The notes under the pieces: generated by a model
Database searches by the model: none
Seen by the model: only the letters and a program-made list of their open reading frames with translations
What the model was told of the DNA's origin: nothing
Part shown: positions 9,876-42,242 of the stretch, piece by piece
Layout of the letters: each line of letters opens with the position of its first letter
How positions within the stretch are numbered: the stretch's first letter is position 1
Translations under genes and position numbers: made by a program
NCBI GenBank assembly: GCA_977016875.1
Contig: CDRNST010000073.1
Location: 248,001-312,000 of the forward strand
Direction: 5' to 3'
From: Pavona decussata
Taxonomy: Eukaryota
Length of the DNA stretch: 64,000 bases

Positions 9876-10254
9876 TTAAAACACATCAGCCGTTGTCAGA
9901 CGCCCCGCCTGAGAGTAAATCGCAATCGACGACACCACGAACAAAATCAAAAATAACCAAAAGAAAATTCGATCCAGCGCGCGAGCAATCTCCCTCCATG
10001 TTTCTTGATTCTCTGCATCTTCATTGGCTGTAACGATAGAAAAGGCCGTTGAAGGTCTTTGCTTCTTCTCCGTAACTTTCCCCATCTCTACATCACCATT
10101 TGCTCGGTTTTCGTCTGCTTCTGTTGTTATCCCGGGGTTTTCTACACCGCTTAAAGTCGTAACCGGTGAGGTAATGACCTCCCTCTTTCGTCGTTTTTTT
10201 CTGCAGCAACCAATCCCGTTTAAGACTGAGAAGTGAATTTAAAACAATAATTTT

Positions 10255-10295
<41 letters not shown>

Positions 10296-10430
10296 GTTAG
10301 TCAGTCGGTCAGCGAGTCAGCGAGTCAGCTAGTCAATCCGTCCGTCCATCCGTTCGTCAGTCAGTCAGTCAGTCAGTCGGTCATTCAGTCGTCAGTCAGG
10401 CAGTCTATCAGTAAGTCAGTCAGTCAGTCA

Positions 10431-10462
<32 letters not shown>

Positions 10463-23914: not shown

Positions 23915-24830
23915 GGAAACATGCATAACCGTTTACAATAGGCCAGTTCCACCAGAGTTTGACTATTGTGATATTGTACGGGATAATTTGTTGGTGACCT
24001 TGGCTGAAAGACTTTAAAAGTTACAAAACCGGGCTGCTAGAGTTATTACTAGACAGGGGTGTGATTACATCAGATCTGATGACATCCTTTATAATCTGAG
24101 ATAGATAAAACTAAGCTAGACGTTTTAAACACAAAGCGCTCATGATGTACAACATCTAGAATAACAATGCACCTATCTGTCTGTAAAAGCTTTTCAAACC
24201 CGCAGTAAATACAAAATACAGTGGAAGCTCTCCTTGTGACCACTATTGTAAGCGACCAGCTCTAGTTATGATTACCATTGTAAAACCCTGTTTGAATTGT
24301 CATTTGAACCCTGTAATCAAAAGTTCTCGTAAGCGATCGCTCCCATAAGCGGCTGCAACCACTTTTGGAAATTACAAACTGGTCTCTTTCTTTGTTTTTA
24401 AGCTCCCGTAAGCTACTACATTCAGATACGTATTACGGCAACTCAGTATACACTCGTGATCACATTTACAGTGATATAGCACTGCGTAATAATGTTCGAA
24501 TCTAAAATTTAAGATGATTTACGGCTGGATCAAGAGTGTTACCCTGAGACCGAGGTAGAAAGCTTTATACCAAAAGCTCTGGTAAGTGACCAGCTTCTAT
24601 TGTCTCAGCTTTTGGTCGCTTACGAGAATGCAATCAGTCGTAAGCGACCAGCTGAGGTTGTCGCTTACGAGAGCTTCGACTCTTGGAAATAATGACAATA
24701 AATTGCTTGTTTGTAAACTGCTCGGACTGAACACATGAAAAGAGCTTTTGCTTACAACGGCGCTAATTCGAAGCTATGACTGAATGACCTTCCACGTTCT
24801 ATGAAACAGGCGATAAATATGTCGTCGTCG
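23915..24830 (+). mobile_element. L2-clade LINE ORF2 3' remnant, interrupted by a MITE
   Basis: Degenerate PEFDYCDIV...KLQNRAARVIT...KALMMYNI...MKRAFAYNGA...NDLP with stop codons. Confidence 0.75.
24219..24682. mobile_element. Tigger/pogo-like MITE
   Basis: TA|CAGTGGAAGCTCTC...GAGAGCTTCGACT ends; reiterated GTAAGCGACCA motifs. Confidence 0.7.
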
Positions 24831-26227
24831 TCCATCAGACGAGAGCTATCATCTGTTAAGCCCTCGCCATTTTTTACATGTCAGTTCGTAGAATGCCCTC
24901 ATGTGTCACGCCGAAAGCTCAAAACAAGAAAAAAAAGTCTAGCAATATAATCAGACTTTGTGGTTGAATATCTCACACGGCATCCCAACAACCCAGGAGT
25001 AATATACTTAGGTTGATTTAGTGATTTGAAACCTTTAAACTGGGCAATATCGAGTTTTATTGCATGAAAACAAGTTAAAATGCATGATTGTACGTTTTAC
25101 CTCCATTTTAGCATATGACAGCATTGTTTGGGTATTGGGAAGTTTCACGGACTTCCTTCATTCCAAGCGTTCCAAAAGCAAACGTAAAACGCTGTTAATA
25201 AACCGCTCAAAGTTGAAGATGTATTACATTTGACGATGCATGTTTCATTGCTTCTACTTCTTTTTCTATTCTATTAATAAACGGAAAATTATGGAACACA
25301 TTTAAACTGCAGTGATTAGTTTTTGTGAGGCCAAATGTTCCACTGGGAATGAAGGGGATGAGTGTGAGCGAGTGACAATTAAGCAAAACGTTATCCAAGA
25401 AACGCACACTGCAAACATGGTTTCGGCAGATCCTTCAAGCAAAATATTTGTAGTTGCCCAGAATCGTGGCGTGATTAAAAAAACCTTATCCGTCCCTTTC
25501 AGAGCTCAATTTGACACTGGTACCTCTTATTCATTTTTCCTGGAAGATGTACGGCATATTTTGCCAAATTTACTTGTCGCGATAATTTCTTCGAAGTTAA
25601 TAAGTAGTTTTGTTTGTGTTTGTTCGAAACTTTCGTGTGCTCATACTGCCATTAGAATGTGGCCTCACCCACTCAGCCAATGAGTGCCCAGTATTTGTAT
25701 GCTTTGTGTTCAATAAACTCTCGGAAATTACGTAAAGTGGCGTGGTCTTTGAAGCACAGGGAAATTGTGGGGTAAAATAAGAGCTAATTAGTATGCCCCA
25801 TATAGAGCATGCTAATGTATTTGATAATTTTGCTGCAAATACACGCTATTAATTAACTAAAGCAACAGGTAAACTTGCAATAATAACAGCGACCATTTTC
25901 TTCGACGATGTTTCTTTACCTAACTTAAGCTAGAGATTTTAATATTACTAAAATAAGAAACCAATTCCTTAACAATTTTTGGGTATAATTAAAAGAGAGA
26001 TTGCTCTCACCGTGTCGAGTCTTTTTTTTTTTTTTTGAATTCTATCTCCTTCCCTTTGCTCAATTTCGTTCACTGTGGTAGGCTTTTGGAATCGTGTAGT
26101 TTTACTGAATTCATTTTCCAAGTACTCGGATATACTTGTGCACTCAAAGGTAAGTAACGCTGGAGTGACAAGGACGGCCTTAAGTTCCACGAGCTCAGTG
26201 TACTGGCTCGTAGCCGAAGCAAATTAA

Positions 26228-26865
26228 GGTTACTCCATACCTCCAGAGATGTCTTCAGAGGTGTCTTGCGTCTAAGCGATGTAGCGCGTTCCATTTAAAC
26301 TGTAGATACCTAAACCCTTATATCAAATTAAAGCTATAGAGCTGGCTATCAAACTAAACCAAGAATTTTGAAATAAAACGAATTGCCGAATTTTTGGCTC
26401 TGTTTTCTCGCAAATTTGGACAGTAGCTGGTTTAACATATAAACAACAAAAACTTGTCTGCGAATTTTTTCTTTCGGAATACTTTTTCTCCGAGAGCGAT
26501 TTTTGTACGATCACTCCACATTTTTTCCCTCTTATTTCGAAAATGCTCTATAACTTTTCATTGCGATTGAATATGGCAAAACGCAGCCAAGTTTTTTTAG
26601 CGCTTTGGGTCCGGAAACTGAGGAGCAAATTAAATTAGCGAAAAACAAAATTCGCTTTGACTTGTAGCTTTAAAAAGGTGATTCGGAAGCTCACATTTAG
26701 AGGTCGTAAAAAATTCGACAATTCATTTTATTTCAAACTTCTTGGTGTAGTTTGATAGCCAGCTCTATAAGCTTTAGGTTGATATAGGGGTTTAGATATC
26801 TACAGTTTAAACTGGACGCGCTACATCGCTTAAACGCGAGACACTTCTGAAGGTATAGGGTAACC
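26228..26865. mobile_element. TTAA-flanked MITE with about 170-bp TIRs upstream of subunit B
   Basis: TTAA|GGTTAC...GTAACC|TTAA with long imperfect inverted arms. Confidence 0.8.
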
Positions 26866-27447
26866 TTAAATGAACCATCAAACAACAAAGAATTAACAAA
26901 GCTCTAATGAAAGAATGGCATTGCCATTCATAAAACTCTACCAACATTGCGGCAGCGCCTAAAACAAATTAAAAACGTGATTCCGAAGTGTGAATGACAC
27001 AATAAAAATATGCTCATAAATAGAAGCTGCATGAAATATGGAGTCTTCGTGGATGTGACCATGTTCTAAGACGGTTCATTAGTCGCATGTTTCTTATGGG
27101 ATATAATATCACTCACATTAGATAGAAAGCCACTCGGGCGCTTCTATCTATGCTCGGGCACTTTATCCCATGCAACACTCGCGCTCATTGTCTTGACTGA
27201 CCCTTCTTAGCAGTCATTAAGAAGCGCAATAGTTTTGTAGGATGCCTCAAGGGACAAAAATACCTATAGAATAACAGAATTTGATTCTTTTGTCTGTAGA
27301 GTATCTGCAAATTAAAAGCCTAATCACAATAGCCGGTTTCAAAGGACCCGTCACTTTTGTCATGTTTAACATTGCGTTGTTATTCGCTGCAAAGAGTGAC
27401 TGAAGAAGCAAAACGCAAACGTATTTGTTTCAGCAAAGTCACTCAAT

Positions 27448-30400
27448 ATGATACGCTTCATTTTGAAGATGGCTGTTCTACTATTCTTGTTGCATAACAC
27501 AGGTGAGTGACAGCTGTCTGTTTTATTAGAGAAGTAAATTTATATTATCACATGTCACTTTGATGCTTTGTTTTTGTTTTTGCTGACTTAAACTCGAGTG
27601 CATAGAGTTGTGTCTACAAACTAAGGTAATTTTAAACAGTCGGTCTCAAATGTTAGCTTCTGGGAGCGCTTCAAACGTAAGAGTGACCACAACCTATGAG
27701 TTCCCTCCTAGTGTAAATTAAACACAAACGAGAATTTCGAATGTGGGGCGCTTGCACAATAGAACACTGAAAAAATACCATCCAAATGTCTTAAACCGAG
27801 TACCGCGAGTACAGCGACTGAATGATAATTCAAAAGGAAAATACAAGGATCAGTGTGAAGTACATGAGAGTTGCTCGGCATATCAATCGGAGTCCATCAT
27901 TGTCGACAGGTTACTGAGTGTCTCAAGTTTGGCGGTTTCTGTTTCAGTCGATTTTGCACCACCAACCGCCATAAATTAGATATGGCGCGTAAAAGGGCAC
28001 GGCGTCTGAAAAATTCCTTAATGGTTGGCTTCTAATCAGCTCACGGTGACAAACCACTCTTCCGGTTTGCGTCTTAATGATTCTTTTGCAAGTACCAAGC
28101 CCAGACTTCTAGTTAATACTGAATATTTCGAATGTTTCAGGCGATTCGATTCTTTGTTAAGCTTGTTTACATGCGCCGAGCGTTTGTTCGTTGGTGCCAA
28201 TCGGCAAAATCAAACACACATAATGTCTTTGTTTTAAAATCTGAATTGACACCTAACCTAATCTCTTGAAACCTTAAATGTTCCTGAAAACGTATATCAT
28301 TTTCGAAGAGTTTGTCAGTTTCCCACATGATGAGGCTTGGAAAGCTCGTGAACCCAAATGAAGATTAAAACTTCTGTACTTTTAAACTTTAAAAAGTTTA
28401 AAAATTCAATATAGGCAATATCGCTTGGTCACTTGTTCCATAAAGGTAGAGTTTATGATTGAGGAAGAAGTCGTTGGGAGCGTATGATTAGGGCAAGCCT
28501 GCAGGGCAAAAAGTTCATCTCCGAGTTTCAACAATGCAACTTACTTGGTAGGGCAATATTGACCCAGTGTGGCAAAAAGAATAAACAAATTAAATTACGA
28601 TAAATTTATGAATGAGAGAAAAGCAGAAAACTAAAATGAAATATTAAAAGGTAAAAAATATGCTGAAATCCTTATGGTAGTTCAAGACCACAATAGTCAA
28701 TGGCATGCTTTGGTAAGGTCGCTAAACGCGCCGTGACGGTGTCTTACATGTACATCATTCAGGCTAAAGCTAACTTATTCAGATTTAATAGGTAACTCGA
28801 CAATGTGCTCACACGTATTTTGTTAATAACTATTTTCCTACAGAGTGTACAGGGACTAACCCGGCGATGCCTAACCCGATGCCTAGAATAAGCCTTTCAG
28901 ATGAGCACCGACTTCGGCAAGAGCTGTTCAGTCAGACAAACAAAGATCGCATGGTTCGGCCCGTGCTGAATTCGTCAGAAGCAGTCAAAGTCAAGTTCGT
29001 GGTTCAGTTGAATTCCGTCGTGGATGTGGTGAGTTCTGTTCTATCCGGTAACAGAAGCTACATGTATATTATAACCCATAGCATGAAAGTATTTCGGAGG
29101 ATTTATCTCTACGACTGACAACTATTTCGGCCTCCATTGTATGCGATTTTAGCGCTAACCTTACTAGTTTTGAAATTCCTGACCTGAGTATTAGTTTTTG
29201 TTAAAGCGACGTATGAAATTCGAGTTATACCAGAAAAGCAGAGCAGTGTAACATTATTACTCCAAATTAAAATCTCGTCGCTTTAATAGAATCTACCAAA
29301 GTAAGCTACATGCATAAAGGGGGGGGGGGGGAGAGAACTCTCTCCGAAGCAGAATGTCTTCAAAGTGCAATGCCAAAAAATATGTTTGGAATGAACCAGT
29401 ATGTTTTCAGCCAGAACACTCTTTTATATGGTTTTTACTCTTTTGCCCACAAATTGAACCAAAATGAATTTGCTTTACATAATCTTATCTTCTCTTCTCT
29501 TTTATTTTATTTTATTTTTGCGTATTGTAAATGAATTGCCTATGAGATCTGTTTGAAGGAAAAATAATAAAACAAGAACGCAAGAAAGACAAACAAGCAA
29601 GGAAAAAACACACATTAGTCAAAACCTACTAAAATTTCATTCTTTACAGTACCACGCGAGTTGCCTAGTTGTTTTGACAACAAGAAGGTCAAAACCGAAT
29701 TCAGCATGGACCAAATGAAACTGTATGCTGTAAACTAAAGTGTATTTCATACGGAAAAAACCGAATCGCTGGTTGTGCAATACATGTACATGGTGTATGG
29801 TAGCATTCGATCTTCTTAAAAGTTTCTCTAAATAGACGAAGGTCAGACCAGCCTCGCGTAAGAGAAAACCCTACCGCACACCGAAGAAACCAATTTGAGG
29901 GTTACGGTACGGAAAACCGAACCACGTCCAAGATAATCCGATCCGTATACGGGACATTAGCCAAGTAGCTCGCTCTGCCATGCAATTTGAGTAGCACGCT
30001 ATGTGTAAGCTGGCAAAGCCGAAAGCTGGCAAGAGTCGCCGCAACGGTTTTAAAGTTGAGAACGAGAAACGAAATGAACAGAACCTTTTTCACTGTTACA
30101 ATAACTTTAGAGCTAGACAAGGGAAAAGACCTCCGTTCAATGGAACAGTTTTCGCAATGGAGTAGCATTGTCACCTTTTGTAAGAGAAGTAAACGTGTTC
30201 AACTTATTAGAAACAATGTTATAAAATTCTGGTGTTTGAAACGCATGCAGCAGTACATGTATACACCTAAGATACGTGTATCTGGAAGTAAAAGTGGCGA
30301 TAAATTACCGGGCCTGGGAAATCAGTAGTTTCGTGATGTTGTCGATGTATGATTTGAGGTGGACCGGAAAATGTTGGATAAACCTTGTGTCAAGGCGATT

Positions 30401-30859
30401 ACCCAGAATAACTAGTTGTCAAAAGAGAATTTCTCGCCCTTTATCCTTCAGCAAGAATTTTTTGGTAGTAGTATTGGGAGAAATAAAAAATTAAGGATCC
30501 TTCTTCTTGCTGTCTTCTATTTCTCTTCGCCAACAAATCTCGTGTGACGAACTATACGTGCATCATTTATATTGTTAGTAGCGTATTTTAATACTCTACT
30601 AACAACAAAACTAGTTATTGCACGATTAGTTCTTTGATAACACGCACATGCAAATGTTCGCTGATTGTATAATTATATCTAAGTAATAAATGCTTTTAGT
30701 TGTCAGGTTTCCTGTGGACCATGACCCGTAACTGTTTGCAGTTACATGTTTTTCGTTATGATTTTACTGACCGAACTAACAGACTAACACTAGTACTTGC
30801 TCGCAAGTTTATTTTACCGAGTTTCAGCTCCACACCTGACCGAAATATAGCCATACTTT

Positions 30860-30894
<35 letters not shown>

Positions 30895-33800
30895 TTTTTT
30901 ACACAGGATAAAAAAGGTCAGGTAGTCTCTACAGACACATTTATCAAACAGGTGGGTGTTTTGGATAAAGGGAGGGGCAAGTTCAAGTATTTTCTTGATG
31001 TTAAGGTCTCAAATGACAACGTCACACTTCTGCAGTCCCATCGGGAGATGTGCGTTCACTACTCTTGTAACGTTACTGACTAGGGACACCACGGGATTCT
31101 TGGTCCCTGACCTTTTTTTCGGGTCACCCCGCAGAATGTTGTAGCTGCCATGTTTGAGTCGAATTAGAGAACACGTGTTCGACAGTTGTTACTTCGATTC
31201 GAAAGCAAAATTAACGTTTAAGTTTAGAATAGTGTTAAAGGTGGGTTTACAACAACTACGAAATTATTTTCTCCATTTCATTTTGCTAGTTGGCCTTTAG
31301 AATAATTTCTGCAAAGAGCGCACATCTAAAAATAAACCATTTATAATCCGGGCTGAAAAAAAAAAAACGTCCAATTTGTAAGTGTCTACGATATAGATCT
31401 GTGAAGGTAGATCCTTTTGAAACGATACTCAGTCATCCGATTTGAAACTCGCTCAGAAACGAAAGAATTATCTCTCAGCCGCACATTTCAGGCGACGTCC
31501 AACTAAAACGGCCTACGCTGTGTACTTTTAATAAGCGAAGACGTTTAATTGCGCAAAAAAATGAAATGAGAAAGTCCAGGTGATCAGGTACCCACCTAGG
31601 CAATAAAAGGTCATATAGTATTGCCTTATTGGCCACTGATATCACCATTGTATGGCATGAAATTTTCGTGTATTTAGTGTATCAAGTGTGAATTAGCCAA
31701 TATTTTGTGTTTTTCAGAAACTAATTTTTCCGTTTCTTAATACTGATGTTTGGGTACGTAACCAATTTTTGCGATTTCTCGACAAAACGAGTATGAACTA
31801 TTTTGAAAAATTTTCGAGAGATCCAAGGGTAACATGTAAACCACATATCGAAACCGAACTAGCTCACTTCGATAATTCGAACAGTTTAGATGGGAACAGA
31901 CGCACAGTAACTGTTTTATGGAATTATATTTTAGCTTAAAAAATCAAACTAAAAATTTTAAGTTCAAAACTAGTGATCCCTTTGAAAGGTTATTTTTACA
32001 CCAGGCGTCTCTTTGTTGGAGTAAATGCGGAATTTTGTTAAATCATAATAAAGTTACTCCAACATACATGTAAGCAGTGAACTAAAATTCATTTCAAGTC
32101 GATCAGGACCAAACTGTGTTGTCACTTGAAACTTACTTTGAAGTGTAACGAAATATACACAAACGTGGAGTAAACTTTTGAGGATTTCGAAAAACTATGT
32201 TTACAATTCGTGAAAATAACCACAAAACGGTCAAAACTACAGGCAAACAAAATGTCATGCTAAGGTGGTTGGTTAATCGTACAAGGTCATTATCTCATTT
32301 CTTCTCCATGTTTCAGCGCTGGAATAACACTTTTCTCATGTGGAAACCAAGTAATTTTGGTGGTCTGAAGAAGATTCTTGTGAGTCCAGAGGAGATATGG
32401 GCTCCTGATATTGTGCTGTTCAACAAGTGAGTGAATGGAAGTATTTTCACCTAATCAGAAGTATTTTACATTATGCAAATTAAATTAACGCCCCTCTCTG
32501 TTAAACGCCCTCTTTCAATTCATAGCCTTATAAGGCGTTACCTAAACTCCGGTTGAAATAGATTCCTGAGGCACTAGTTTTAAGGACATTGTAAAATCTG
32601 TCCTTCTAACTTGCTCGTTAGTTAGTAATTCTGGATTTAACCCATCCTCAAAACAGCTTAGAGAATGAGCTTATAGTAAACACTCCAGGAGTTCATTCGA
32701 GTGAATTCGGTAGAGCCATTTTTTTTCTTGTTATTGTCATTTTTTTTATTCCAGCATATAACTAATGCATCTGAAACCAGAATGAGGGTGTAACTGTGAA
32801 ATTAGGAACCTTTTAAGGTCATGCACTAGGATCTTGGCTACCAAGCAAGAGACAGCCTCATCTGAGACTTCTTTGAATCGTCAAACAGCTGTACTTCAAA
32901 GGTCTACAAACACCGTGTTACATGGGGTGCTTACCATTTACACAAACTACCCGGAGGGAAATTTTCGGCATAAATAAGAAATGATTTAGCTTGTCTTAAC
33001 AGAAGATGGATAACATGCAAAATGTATGAACATCAGCTGTCAATCCCAAAAGGAGTAATAAAAATGCATCACTTTGACCAGAAGCCCATAATTTCAGAAG
33101 TACTCCAAACGGAATGATGCGTACCATTTGATTTTCCAACTGGAATTTCCTGGTTTTCCATGTAAACGGTAAGCACCTCAATTTCACCCACGCTTCCACT
33201 CAAAGAATCGGTCACTAAGTGTAAAATCGACTATTATTATTACACCTAATGGTACCTTTTTGATACGCTTCGGCGGTATATCAGGCGAGTTTGGTTGAGC
33301 CATGGTTCGTATTTTGGCGAGACCAAACGAGCCTGATATATGCCGCCGATTTAAGCTTACCAATAAGGTACGATTAGGTATTTACCGTACCCAAATTCAG
33401 TCCAAAATCCGGCGATATTTTTAGTAGTTACGGTAATAAAATCTGTCCAGTTTAGTTTTAGCGGGAAATTGATTTTACTCTTTTTACGACCGGAAAACAC
33501 CAACTAAATCTTACACTGTAAAGTACGAAGTTTTTTTTTATTAGAACAATTTAATTTCAGCTTATCGTACGGTAACATTACTTTACTTAAGAGTGACCAT
33601 GATATCCTGCAATATCAGATCAGTGACTTGATATCGTATGATGTTAGGAAAGTCAGACTAGGCTTCTGATTGGCTAATTGGGAATTTACATACGGTTATA
33701 AAAAATACTTAAGTCTAGCTTTCAGTAATCCAATAAAACACCATGAGTCCCGCCAAACATCTTGAGGATGCGGAAATTATCTGAGGTAACGGGTCTTCAA

Positions 33801-36102
33801 TGCAAGGTTCTAAATATTTAAATGATAACGAAATATTGATTCCATCACTCGGTTTCTATTTTTCTTCTACTGCCTTGGAAAAGTGGCCACGGGCTTGATA
33901 GGGCAAGTGTTGAGAATATACTCTCTAGTTTTCGCATCACTTGGGTTTGTTTATTTTTTCTATAGTGCAGATGATAATGTTGCTCAGGCAGGCTACACAG
34001 AGAAGTTCAAGACATGGATCGTTATCTACCACAATGGGATGAGCGACTGGAATTCCCCTGTGTCCTTTAAAAGCACGTGTAACTTTGACGTCACGTATTT
34101 TCCGTACGACGAACACCGTTGTGAAATGATTTTTGGTTCATTAACGGCAGACAAGACGCTGATTGATATTAGGACCGAAGAAAAGCGACTAGAAAACCAT
34201 AAAAGTGACAGAGATGCAAAAGGCACGGAGGAACACGACGACGACGACGACGACGAAGAATTTGGTACGCCGTACATGTACCGAATAATGCAGTTTTTAG
34301 ATGACAGTCGTGAGCCAAAATTAGCCAATCACAATGACCTTAAAGGGGAAGTATCACGCAAATTTGATGTCATTTGAAAACCCCAAAAAGTTTGTCTGAC
34401 AACAGGAACAAATAAATAATTGTCTAGTTTTGTTATCAATTATCACCCAAATGCAATAAAACTGTCGATTAGTTCCTCTGGCCAGAGACAGAGTAGGCCG
34501 GTATGGATTGAAACTTGAACAATGTTAAGCTAATGTTTTTCAAGTTCTCGCATTTTTGTTTCCAAAATGCGCTCGAACAGATCACGAGTTGTTCCTTTCA
34601 AGAATCAAGTTGCATTCTTTCCTCTCGTCATTCTAGAATTATTTGGCAGCTGATTGAAGGTCTTATTTCATCATTTTTAACAAAAGATATCAAAAACCCA
34701 TGAAACTTCCCTTTTAAGCGGTATTATTTAGTAGGCCTACACCTGGCCTAAGGCTCTACTTTCCCTCGACCCTGATGACCTGAAGCACCATTGCGTTTAT
34801 GAATTAGAGTATTCCTCTGTTGTTCGTTCTTTTTTTTTCTCTCGACTAATACTGGGAGACGTCGCAAATGTTGCAGATTGCCCACATAACGAGCCAATCA
34901 GAACTCAAAGAAAAACAAGTAATAAGTCAATCGTAGGAAAACGAACAAGGTAGACAATTGTCTCACTTGCTGGGAAAACGCCAAACTTGACTTCATAATC
35001 AAAACTAAAGACTATTAAGGCTATTGACCTAAAATCAATCGAATTGAGGGTTTAAATTACATTAAGTTTTCGCATTGAAAATCACGTCAAAAAGTGAAGA
35101 ATAAAAAGTTGTCAACAGGCTACCGCAAATTCTTAACCAAATTTATGTCATAGGCCTTCTTACGTAGGCATTCATCTTCTCCCAAATGAAGTAAATATTT
35201 AACATTTACAGCATTTCAAATTAACACTTCTGGCTTTAATTTCAGAACAAATAAGCAACAATGGTGGTTGGTCAGTTCAAATGGTTGAGGCACGTAGGAA
35301 AGAGAGGATTCCCAGGGAACACCCCTATCCATTCACAGAGATCCACTTGACCTTCGTAATCCGCCGCAAGCCACTTCACTTTGTCGTCTTCTCAATGATG
35401 CCCTGTATGTTAATCGGAGCCCTTATTCTTGTTAGCTTCTTCATCCCTGCCGAGAGCGGAGAACGAATCGGTTTCAGCTGCACGGTCCTTCTCTCCGTTA
35501 GTGTATATTTGATCATTGTGACGGAAGCTCTGCCAGAGCAGTCGGACACGCTGCCATTGATCGGTGTATACTACATAATAATCATGATGGAAATAGGATT
35601 GGCGTTGACCGCCACCATTGTTGTACTCAAAGCACATCACTGTACCTCCGAGCCACCTGCATACCTCAAATGGTGCTTGTTCATCAACAAGTTTTATCGG
35701 TGTTGCCGAAAGGCCGCTAAGCGGAAACGCTCGACCAAAATCGAATCCCCGGTGCAAGTAATGGTGGTAGATTGCGAAAGTGGTAAATCAGATGATTGCA
35801 AGATGGAAGATGGTCAGCTGCAGGTAACGGAGGATAGGTACAGGAAAAAAAGCTTTTTTGACATGAGAAGTCTCTCAGGAAGCTCCTCAAGCCAGCTGTT
35901 CACTAACAGTGTCATGAACGTGCAAGAAGAGGAAGAAGACTGGATCGAGACTTGGCGTCAAATTGGCAAGGCCTTGGATAGAATTTTCTTCTGGACTTTC
36001 GTCGTTTCTTTCTTCGTTTCGACTATTGTTGTGTTCACCTACGGTCCTTCCTTGGCCAAGCCTCTGAATGCAGAAATGGACAAGCTATATGATGTAAAAT
36101 GA
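27448..36102 (+). CDS. nAChR-like Cys-loop ligand-gated cation channel subunit B (non-alpha, 516 aa, 6 coding exons)
   Basis: Exons 27448-27502, 28844-29028, 30907-30951, 32317-32426, 33966-34264, 35246-36102; all GT-AG and in frame (1551 nt). Signal peptide MIRFILKMAVLLFLLHNT, EHRL..ELF, MVRPV, IWAPDIVLFN, Cys-loop CNFDVTYFPYDEHRC, four TM helices with GER-M2. Confidence 0.93.
32924..33179. mobile_element. Small MITE in intron 4 of subunit B
   Basis: TIRs GGTGCTTACCATTTACA / TGTAAACGGTAAGCACC. Confidence 0.7.
33240..33385. repeat. Imperfect palindrome (hairpin core of a non-autonomous element)
   Basis: ggcggtatatcaggcgagtttggt...accaaacgagcctgatatatgccgcc with matching outer arms. Confidence 0.65.
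34344..34713. mobile_element. Kolobok-type MITE
   Basis: TTAA|AGGGGAAGTATCA...TGAAACTTCCCTT|TTAA. Confidence 0.8.
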
Positions 36103-40500: not shown

Positions 40501-41144
40501 AGTGAAATAGAGACTCTTTTCCTTAATCGTTAACCTACTTATATGAATCGAAATTCTTCAAGGCTATTCTACTTTACAAATTTAATATAACAATATGAAT
40601 TTTTTGACAGGTTTCGCCGCTATGGGTTAATTGGTTTTTCGCCAGATTTATTTTAAAATTACGGTAGCCAACAATGGAGTATTTTCAAATGTTATATCAA
40701 ACGATTAAAAAATTTTGCTGTGTCAATTATGACAGTACAAGGCTCCAGAAATTCCCAAAAACTACTAACACTATACACAATTTTGGTTAAAAAGAAATGT
40801 TGCTTACATTTTGGAAAATTTTTTTTAAACGCTTGCAAAATCTCGATGGATAAGATAGCAAACCATCTATTTACGTATTTACTCAACAGGGAACTCAATC
40901 TTAACTTGTCAACCTGCCTTTCTCTCAGTTGATTCATTTGATTTATTTTCAGACAGCTGTGAGGCTACAGCAGGGATCTCCTCCTCCGCTAGCCTGAGTA
41001 GAACACACATTCGTTAGACAACAGATTTAGTTTGCGTCGGAGTTTTGCCACATAATAGCCAAAGATATTTGAAGGATAACTTTGGTGGTCATCTTGGAAC
41101 CGACGAGAAAAATAAACAGTTTTAAAAAAGCCGAGGGCAAGAAG

Positions 41145-42242
41145 ATGAATAACACAACTTCTTTTCAACAAGTCGAACATTCTCAACCATCTGTAGAAAT
41201 TGCATCCCTCACCAAAGCCGTAGACATGGTCTATTTAGTGTCAGGAATATATCTCTCAATCATCGCCGCGGTAACAGTATTTGGTAACGGTCTTCTTCTT
41301 CTGGCAATCATCAAGGATCCGTTCAAGGCATTCAGGACACCCACAACAGTTTTTATAGTGGGGCTTGCGTTGGCTGACTTTCTTACTGGGCTCATAGTAG
41401 ATCCATTAACAGCCTTCCTAGACATTGCTTCTTATTTGAAGCTCTTTAACACAAACAATGCCAACATGGCAAAGATTCTAGAAGCCTGTATTCAAGTTAA
41501 CATCCATATTTCGTTTATTACGATGAATGCGTCTTTCCTAATTCTCCTCGCCTTAACAATTTGCCAGTATGTCGCGATATCGTTCCCGCACAAGCATCGC
41601 ACGTTGGTGATTCGCCGAAACACCATCATTGCCCTTGCTGTAATCACAATATATTCCGTTATCTTCTCTCTTCTCTCTGAATTCGAGGTTCCTCTGAGAA
41701 TCAAGCTAGAGATAGACACACATTTGAACACTAACGTGGTCGCGATTATTCTTCTTCTGTGCTATGTACTTCTCTACCGAGCTCATCGCGTGCATCTTAA
41801 CAGCGTGAGTAGTCTGGATGATAACGATAGTCAGAGGAAGCGGAGGAGAGAGCAGCAGCGTGAATTCACCGCCTTGAATCTGCTTCTAGTAATCTTTCTT
41901 CTGATCTTCACCCTGCCATCCATTATCTTTTGGAATCTTATGCTTTACAGCTATTACGACCGGCACTTGTTATCTCTTAGGGAGAATTTAAGACTCGATC
42001 TCTCAAGAGTCCTTACATTTGATGTGCTGGTCATGAAATTCGCCCTGGATCCTTGCATTTACGCTTGGAGACTCTCAAGGTACCGCAGTGCAATCATGAA
42101 TATTATGAGGTGCGGACGTGGTGGACTTGCCGTTGATGACTTTTCCGACGGAGGAAACAGCCAAGAGCGTCCTCAAACCAGCAGTATGTTGATTCCGCTA
42201 AACAATCCTACTCATCGGACAGCATCGGAGATTGAAAGTTAA
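41145..42242 (+). CDS. Orphan class A (rhodopsin-like) GPCR, single coding exon, 365 aa
   Basis: Seven hydrophobic segments; N-terminal NNTT sequons, TM1 GN, TM2 LALAD, TM3 end ICQYVAI, TM6 FTLP, TM7 DPCIY and helix 8 YRSA. A probable 5' UTR splice acceptor (ttttcag) ends at 40952. Confidence 0.92.
   Translation: MNNTTSFQQVEHSQPSVEIASLTKAVDMVYLVSGIYLSIIAAVTVFGNGLLLLAIIKDPFKAFRTPTTVFIVGLALADFLTGLIVDPLTAFLDIASYLKLFNTNNANMAKILEACIQVNIHISFITMNASFLILLALTICQYVAISFPHKHRTLVIRRNTIIALAVITIYSVIFSLLSEFEVPLRIKLEIDTHLNTNVVAIILLLCYVLLYRAHRVHLNSVSSLDDNDSQRKRRREQQREFTALNLLLVIFLLIFTLPSIIFWNLMLYSYYDRHLLSLRENLRLDLSRVLTFDVLVMKFALDPCIYAWRLSRYRSAIMNIMRCGRGGLAVDDFSDGGNSQERPQTSSMLIPLNNPTHRTASEIES

Follow-up and report, generated by a model that had tools for sequence, protein, structure and literature searches.

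What is a nicotinic-type channel subunit for once its acetylcholine (ACh) site has gone and its pore has not? The question is raised by a 64,000-nucleotide stretch of the stony coral Pavona decussata (assembly GCA_977016875.1, contig CDRNST010000073.1, positions 248,001 to 312,000 of the forward strand; hereafter the window), which contains two complete genes of the nicotinic acetylcholine receptor (nAChR) family, A and B. These are divergent, lying head to head with their first exons 5.7 kb apart, and a third paralogue, A2, lies to the left of the window. A, B and A2 are intact subunit genes of nAChR-family Cys-loop channels, with a normal gating scaffold and a cation-type pore. As judged from their residues, neither the principal nor the complementary face of A and B is able to form an ACh pocket in the classical way. 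The genes make up an old and small set, for which a role as silent partner subunits is more likely than one as a new family of chemical sensors.

The ACh Site Is Lost from Both Subunit Faces

All exon pieces of A and B match PF02931 or PF02932 (Neur_chan_LBD and Neur_chan_memb), the domain pair of the nAChR branch of Cys-loop channels. Searches were run exon by exon, full-length queries being stored orthologue proteins, and joined exon models of A and B were made for alignment, trees and dN/dS. Among solved structures in the PDB, the top relatives of an A orthologue are the alpha4, alpha3, beta4 and gamma chains of nAChRs (E 2e-64 to 1e-58), and the HMMER alignment of this orthologue, P0072, to human alpha4 (5kxi_A, E 2e-64) was used to place the classical site positions. 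An exon-level PDB search with loop A, meant for the muscle gamma and delta chains, returned alpha chains first.

At these positions the classical residues are replaced one after another. Loop C reads TKDYNNEDRQFREV in A and RKERIPREHPYPFTEI in B, neither with a Cys-Cys pair; the Tyr-x-Cys-Cys motif is absent, and the last aromatic alone remains, as Phe. The loop D Trp is Val in A and A2 (EMVIKQ in A), Phe in B (DTFIKQ) and Glu in P0072, and varies among V, I, T, E and F across the orthologues. The loop A Tyr is replaced by Glu in A (VLENNAD) and by Phe in B (VLFNNAD), strings that arise only on splicing, through a split AA|T codon. The Trp and Tyr of loop B have become Leu and Ala (SLTAD) in both. 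The absence of the Cys-Cys pair and the changes in loops A, B and D of genes A and B had been proposed from the letters of the window by an earlier, sequence-only reading, and each is borne out by the alignment to human alpha4.

The loss extends to all clade members that were aligned. A column census was taken over 84 sequences: A, A2 and B with 17 orthologues (20 clade members) and 64 others. The loop D Trp, the loop A Tyr, the loop B Trp and Tyr and the loop C Tyr-Cys-Cys are missing from 20 of 20 clade sequences, whereas the 64 remaining sequences retain the loop D Trp in 56 cases, the loop B Trp in 54 and the loop C Cys-Cys in 53. No A or B sequence among the 20 thus has the principal face of an alpha-type subunit, and none has the loop D Trp of an ACh-binding complementary face.

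The pore tells the opposite story. M2 of both A and B carries Glu at −1′, Arg at 0′, Thr at 6′, Leu at 9′, Val at 13′ and Glu at 20′ (ESGERIG...LL...TE), with no anion-type P-A-R motif, the sequence-level hallmarks of a cation pore. Across the clade, 0′ Arg and 9′ Leu are invariant (20/20), −1′ Glu is present in 17 of 20 and 20′ is acidic in all but two. The Cys-loop has the C-x13-C spacing (CNLNVEFFPFDKQKC in A and CNFDVTYFPYDEHRC in B, with FPFD or FPYD), and M1–M4, the pre-M1 Arg and the M2–M3 Pro are all present. A and B are 46% identical in the extracellular domain (ECD), 75% in M1–M3, 35% in the cytoplasmic loop and 48% in M4. The original proposal of a dismantled ACh pocket on a conserved cation pore, with membrane segments more alike than the ECDs, is therefore upheld. 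The gating elements are kept as well, and the loss of the site is common to all 20 clade members. In A2 the −1′ Glu of M2 is Gly. The same substitution has occurred independently in the A-type proteins P0040 (Pocillopora meandrina) and P0038 (Acropora millepora), a recurrent change at the main charge-selectivity ring.

What has replaced the site differs between the A-type sequences and gene B. In A-type sequences the loop A Glu is conserved in 16 of 16, the loop B Leu in 14 of 16 within R-S-x-T-[AS]-D, and QAGH[LV]EKF in 16 of 16, along with an acidic, DDPEE-type loop F; the length and sequence of loop C and the residue in loop D drift among the same orthologues. In gene B, loop C is basic, and loop F is ∼15 residues longer and very acidic. 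Canonical cnidarian subunits have a counterpart of QAGxxEKFxT, a segment first taken for a clade-specific insert: Nematostella P0238 reads SGSVEKFKT, Orbicella P0241 reads GGLEKYKT and Acropora P0077 reads GALEKYKT, all of the form GxxEK[FY]KT. Compared with alpha4, P0238 and P0077 are longer here by the same amount. The segment is therefore a feature of the subfamily and not of the clade.

Structure of Genes A and B

Gene A lies on the minus strand, at 9876–21713, and encodes 463 amino acids (aa) in 7 exons, with GT-AG at each junction.

21665..21713, minus strand: gene A predicted exon 1, start codon and signal peptide (MARFGYICLFFFLRSS), phase-1 GT donor; weak tblastn match with orthologue N termini
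15301..15461, minus strand: gene A exon 2, N-terminal helix and β1; PF02931 match
14490..14534, minus strand: gene A exon 3, loop D (DNKAQVITTEMVIKQ), Trp to Val
13938..14466, no strand: assembly gap (run of N) within gene A intron 3 (14489–13254), coding sequence untouched
13144..13253, minus strand: gene A exon 4, ends VVLEN plus split codon, loop A Tyr to Glu
12355..12596, minus strand: gene A exon 5, loop E segment QAGHLEKF, Cys-loop, loop B SLTAD, acidic loop F; PF02931, E 4.9e-18
10950..11384, minus strand: gene A exon 6, loop C without Cys-Cys, M1–M3 with cation-type M2; PF02932, E 1.2e-21
9876..10225, minus strand: gene A exon 7, cytoplasmic loop, M4 and stop codon; PF02932 match

The phase-1 join of exons 1 and 2 gives D-VLGQ, as in P0072. 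The assembly gap begins 24 nt past the donor of exon 3 (CAG|gtaaga). Exons 3 and 4 join in frame (...EMVIKQ-SWTNPFLQW...) and are collinear with A2 and all orthologues, so no residue of gene A is missing there. The A2 counterpart of intron 3 holds a long trinucleotide repeat, a likely cause of the gap. Intron 1 contains a degenerate copy of exon 2 (15555–15686, minus strand; AVLRQTFFKQYDRMERKNL versus YLLRQTLFKEYDRMVRPVL) ∼100 nt upstream of the real exon, and the sequence near this copy, at 15638–16140, resembles an inverted repeat.

Gene B lies on the plus strand, at ∼27448–36102, and encodes ∼510 aa with canonical splice sites.

27448..27502, plus strand: gene B candidate exon 1, signal peptide MIRFILKMAVLLFLLHNT, phase-1 GT donor
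28844 (or 28853)..29028, plus strand: gene B exon 2, N-terminal helix and β1; acceptor at 28844 or 28853
30907..30951, plus strand: gene B exon 3, loop D (DKKGQVVSTDTFIKQ), Trp to Phe
32317..32426, plus strand: gene B exon 4, ends DIVLFN plus split codon, loop A Tyr to Phe
33966..34264, plus strand: gene B exon 5, QAGYTEKF, Cys-loop, SLTAD, long acidic loop F
35246..36102, plus strand: gene B exon 6, basic loop C without Cys-Cys, M1–M3, cytoplasmic loop, M4 and stop codon; PF02932, E 1e-30

Candidate exon 1 is the sole match in a scan of 21.8–28.85 kb for an ATG with a hydrophobic core and a phase-1 donor, and its ATG, frame and donor are kept in an orthologous locus, L002. A hydrophobic stretch upstream of the first coding exon of B in Porites lutea, at one point taken for a signal peptide, is a translated polypyrimidine tract before the acceptor. 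Introns 4 and 5 of gene B contain high-copy interspersed repeats, seen at 32850–33200 and 34340–34700 as very high contig depth with many loose ends in all four sequencing runs.

An Old, Small Clade within a Cnidarian Subfamily

The best protein matches are an ENA contig (94%), Porites lutea (78%) and Oculina (72%). A six-frame search of the whole 602 Mb genome with exon 5 of A finds A at 100%, A2 at 81% and B at 50%, with nothing else above 52%; the clade has three genes in this genome (A, A2 and B), against a total of at least 112 exon-level PF02932 matches. In an exhaustive HMMER search, scores drop from 589 bits for an A-type representative (61% identity) to at most 305 bits. Clade fragments aside, the closest match is to an incomplete model from Nematostella (46%), and full-length proteins from outside the clade reach 40% identity at most.

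Two trees were built, a quick one with 84 rows and a careful one with 40. A and B together are supported at 100/99, A at 100/99 and B at 100/100. Group A comprises Orbicella-type, Pocilloporidae, Acroporidae and Porites-type members and the window genes, and follows the division into robust and complex corals; group B spans Oculina, a robust coral, and Porites, a complex one. Because both groups span robust and complex corals, the A/B duplication and all the site losses predate that split. A and A2 are sisters, and A2 is therefore a recent duplicate. Word-index searches found no B-type protein for Acropora, Montipora, Stylophora or Pocillopora, which may reflect loss or missing annotation.

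A and B fall within a cnidarian-only subfamily (support 100/100), which has named members in Nematostella, stony corals and the jellyfish Sanderia. They are consequently neither orthologous to the cephalopod chemotactile receptors nor of common origin with them, and their ACh site was lost independently. The sequence-only reading had foreseen this independence when it described the genes as an independent cnidarian radiation, but the radiation itself did not survive: the genome holds A, A2 and B only, and the tree resolves two old orthologue groups that track the species tree and stand beside a beta-like lineage.

This sister lineage, here called C-type, is joined to A and B with moderate support (88/93) and consists of a gene elsewhere in the genome of the window (G000 C144:3645001-3652000, or L008) and Pocillopora verrucosa P0299, annotated as "alpha-5 isoform X1." Like A and B, the C-type subunits have no Cys-Cys, have lost the loop B Trp and carry a comparable segment, QAGHTELFK. 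Unlike A and B, they keep the loop D Trp, the loop A Tyr and the loop B Tyr, an ordinary beta-like profile that looks like that of a normal complementary subunit. L008 bears the motifs QAGHTELFKTW and GSATYG, and it is its Pocillopora verrucosa orthologue that bears the "alpha-5" label. The next relatives are of the alpha type: Nematostella P0238 and P0287, both with a complete ACh site, and another gene from the genome of the window (G000 C78:1008001-1018000). P0238 (Nematostella vectensis XP_032232187.1, "alpha-6") and the C78 gene share with A and B the subfamily, a short cytoplasmic loop and the GxxEKFKT segment with its extra length, and P0099, which models part of the P0238 gene, shows 46% identity with A-type P0072. 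In contrast to A and B, P0238 retains the loop D Trp, the loop A Tyr, the loop B Trp and Tyr and the loop C Tyr-x-Cys-Cys. The C78 gene, read at loops A, B and C, retains the loop B Trp and the Tyr-x-Cys-Cys, with Ile in loop A.

A beta-like sister that still has the loop D Trp and the loop A Tyr points to descent of A and B from a partner subunit. On these residues, the simplest path would run from an alpha-type subunit, through a non-alpha, beta-like one, to a subunit that is blind on both faces.

The Genes Are under Constraint and Their Arrangement Is Conserved

Rates were estimated as pairwise Nei-Gojobori dN/dS (omega), with small counts.

Gene B versus its L002 orthologue: whole coding sequence 0.32; ECD 0.42; M1–M3 0.07; cytoplasmic loop 0.54; M4 0.09
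Gene A versus A2: whole coding sequence 0.39; ECD 0.34; M1–M3 0.23; cytoplasmic loop 1.15; M4 0.35

The overall values of 0.32 and 0.39 indicate purifying selection on the genes. A comparison of extracellular with transmembrane regions had been suggested at the outset, and in both pairs the ECD lies above M1–M3 (0.42 versus 0.07; 0.34 versus 0.23), with all of these values well below 1. The ECD gives no sign of positive selection, omega being below 0.45 in both pairwise comparisons. Relative to the window, L002 is ∼81%–88% identical in introns and 92%–97% in exons, and it has the same intact exons and splice sites.

A2 is found on the minus strand of the contig that holds the window (C73:239135-244399). 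It shares 84% identity with A, and its exons 2–7 are intact. Its sole candidate part within the window is a first exon.

2930..2978, minus strand: A2 candidate first exon, signal peptide MAWICRICILLYLLLP, GT donor

A second, similar signal-peptide exon, MTLLCRSCILLFLLSP, is found at ∼C73:246850-246950 on the minus strand; both copies have a GGTAAGT donor, and both are situated between the genes A and A2. They may serve A2 as alternative first exons or be left over from another duplication. A PF02932 match with six stops to the left of the window had raised the idea that A2 is a pseudogene, but this match overruns the end of exon 6 (240050) into the intron. The tandem array of at least three paralogues described from the window is thus correct as to the existence of the third paralogue and incorrect as to the layout, A and B being head to head and A2 almost wholly outside.

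In Porites lutea the locus has the same layout: a minus-strand gene for a pentameric ligand-gated ion channel (pLGIC), B on the plus strand, then a 7tm_1 G-protein-coupled receptor (GPCR) gene and a UCH/MYND gene. At L002, B is likewise followed by the GPCR gene, the position of A being beyond the DNA covered. The counterpart in the window is a single-exon 386-aa open reading frame of the rhodopsin family (41082–42242, plus strand; PF00001, E 5e-11). Since the same GPCR follows B in Porites lutea and L002, the order A, B, GPCR is conserved. DNA alignment of the Porites lutea intergenic region with the window gave no match, the two being too diverged. In Orbicella faveolata, the NCBI models P0064 and P0071, on one contig, join A-type N-terminal to B-type C-terminal exons or duplicate A exons, which suggests either a different, same-strand arrangement of the cluster or mis-annotation.

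Transcripts occur in other corals, where A-type proteins are found on 1.5–2.3 kb transcript contigs with the whole coding sequence and a B-type transcript contig, L001, is spliced. L001, from the Logan collection, has an internal stop before M4, changes of W to C, P to H and G to E relative to the genomic protein P0008, and no in-frame ATG ahead of its hydrophobic N-terminal stretch or before the mature N terminus. These oddities could be due to an error of assembly, to allelic variation or to decay of this copy in that species. No splice joint was found in the read contigs for Pavona decussata. Two metatranscriptome contigs, X1 and X2, were set aside as RNA evidence for B: they run unspliced through the intron before the last exon and are ∼5% different, so that they come from a relative, and they may be DNA or pre-mRNA.

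Possible Roles: Accessory Subunits or Receptors for Another Ligand

Our preferred reading, held tentatively, is that A and B are non-agonist-binding structural (accessory) subunits of heteromeric cation channels. They descend from a cnidarian alpha-type lineage through a beta-like, non-alpha stage and would assemble with one another and/or with alpha-type partners from their own subfamily. In such channels A and B would line the cation pore with their M2 segments and adjust assembly, conductance or gating, and any agonist site would lie at interfaces formed by the partners. The role is suggested by the combination of beta-like descent, conserved clustering and binding loops that have relaxed on an intact gating and pore scaffold. 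Drift of loop C and of the loop D residue among orthologues is, moreover, not what is expected of a conserved new ligand site.

There are precedents for subunits of this kind. The structural or accessory subunits of vertebrates (muscle beta1; neuronal beta3 and alpha5) likewise line the cation pore without a canonical agonist site and need partners, and they are found in conserved clusters with the genes of those partners. The automatic NCBI names of A and B orthologues are "beta-3-like," "non-alpha-2-like" and "alpha-5-like." A and B differ from the vertebrate subunits in that they are not orthologous to them (the subfamily is cnidarian only) and in that degeneration affects both faces, the loop D Trp included.

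Some of the evidence weighs against an accessory role. Loss of the loop D Trp goes beyond what is known of the vertebrate accessory subunits. With no B-type protein found in Acroporidae or Pocilloporidae, A cannot depend on B everywhere. The conserved, pocket-lining elements of A could mark a new binding site and not a mere interface. In Pavona decussata itself, expression amounts to two small, low-depth contigs confined to the last exon of gene B, from runs (X5 and X6) that are guessed to be RNA.

Parts of this evidence lead to the strongest alternative, which we regard as possible but doubtful: that A and/or B are orphan receptors, forming homomeric or A/B cation channels gated or modulated at a remodelled, acid-lined pocket by something other than ACh, such as protons, divalent cations, an amine or another endogenous ligand. 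Such a receptor would account for an aromatic box that is gone from both faces of every A/B interface while the Cys-loop, pre-M1 Arg, M2–M3 Pro and pore stay intact, for the conserved replacements in A (the loop A Glu, R-S-x-T-[AS]-D, QAGH[LV]EKF and the DDPEE-type loop F), for the basic loop C and long acidic loop F of B, and for the head-to-head adjacency of the two genes in both the window and Porites lutea. It sits less well with variability at the loop D position and in loop C, the usual ligand cap, with ECD constraint that is only moderate (omega 0.34–0.42), and with the beta-like, non-alpha descent, which favors a partner role. A more specific form of this alternative, in which A and B together would build an ACh-insensitive stony-coral cation channel set by protons, Ca2+ or another cation, or an endogenous ligand, with a pocket relined by conserved acidic residues (loop A Glu and loop F) and a basic loop C from B, we consider unlikely. 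If true, the nicotinic scaffold would have been converted to a new modality a second time, independently, in the sister group of bilaterians.

Other nAChR-like receptors offer a precedent for this alternative (PMC10338036): the cephalopod receptors, and Alpo4 of Alvinella pompejana, which is nAChR-like, lacks the loop C Cys-Cys, does not respond to ACh and has yielded no ligand despite screening. Alpo4 keeps its aromatic cage, however (F103, W159, Y199, Y205 and W65), whereas A and B have lost all of it except a Phe at the last loop C aromatic.

A chemosensory family of the cephalopod type, that is, an array growing in tandem to detect environmental chemicals, was among the ideas with which the locus was first flagged, and it now appears improbable. 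The chemotactile receptors of octopus and squid (CRT1 and CRB1) do share with A and B an nAChR-like scaffold, the loss of the ACh-site signature and a cation channel (PMC10338036, citing van Giesen 2020, Kang 2023 and Allard 2023 for receptors that lack ACh-binding residues), and A2 is one recent duplicate. Against this, A and B are of independent origin, the genome has only three such genes, and the orthologue groups hold steady across Scleractinia, where lineage-specific growth stops at single duplicates and no fast-turnover array has formed; nor does the ECD, with omega below 0.45, look positively selected. The cephalopod family, by comparison, is large and lineage-specific. That the genes are decaying or non-functional, with drifting ECDs, is more improbable still, for although ECD omega exceeds transmembrane omega, the −1′ Glu has become Gly in A2, P0040 and P0038, the B type was not found in two coral families, L001 has an internal stop and odd substitutions, and expression evidence in this species is weak, A, A2, B and the L002 orthologue have unbroken reading frames with every splice site in place, exons are better conserved than introns (92%–97% versus 81%–88%), omega is well below 1 and as low as 0.07 in M1–M3, and both orthologue groups occur in both major coral suborders.

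What the Coral Subunits Add to the Nicotinic Family

Molluscs, annelids and nematodes are well known to have divergent orphan nAChR-like subunits, some of which became the taste-by-touch receptors of cephalopods. A and B are a new cnidarian case of a known kind, nAChR-like subunits without an ACh site. Our literature searches on the A/B coral clade found no paper describing these genes, and the clade is not described in a study of Nematostella nAChRs (PMC6825365) or in one of the lophotrochozoan expansion (PMC6896357). In stony corals such subunits form a small, conserved set in which the ACh pocket has been lost most completely, and the passage from alpha-type to beta-like and on to fully "blind" subunits can be read within a single cnidarian subfamily. 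If A and B are accessory subunits, they would indicate which coral nAChRs are heteromeric. If they gate alone, they would be receptors of a new modality in an animal that relies on ion and chemical sensing for its calcification, settlement and symbiosis.

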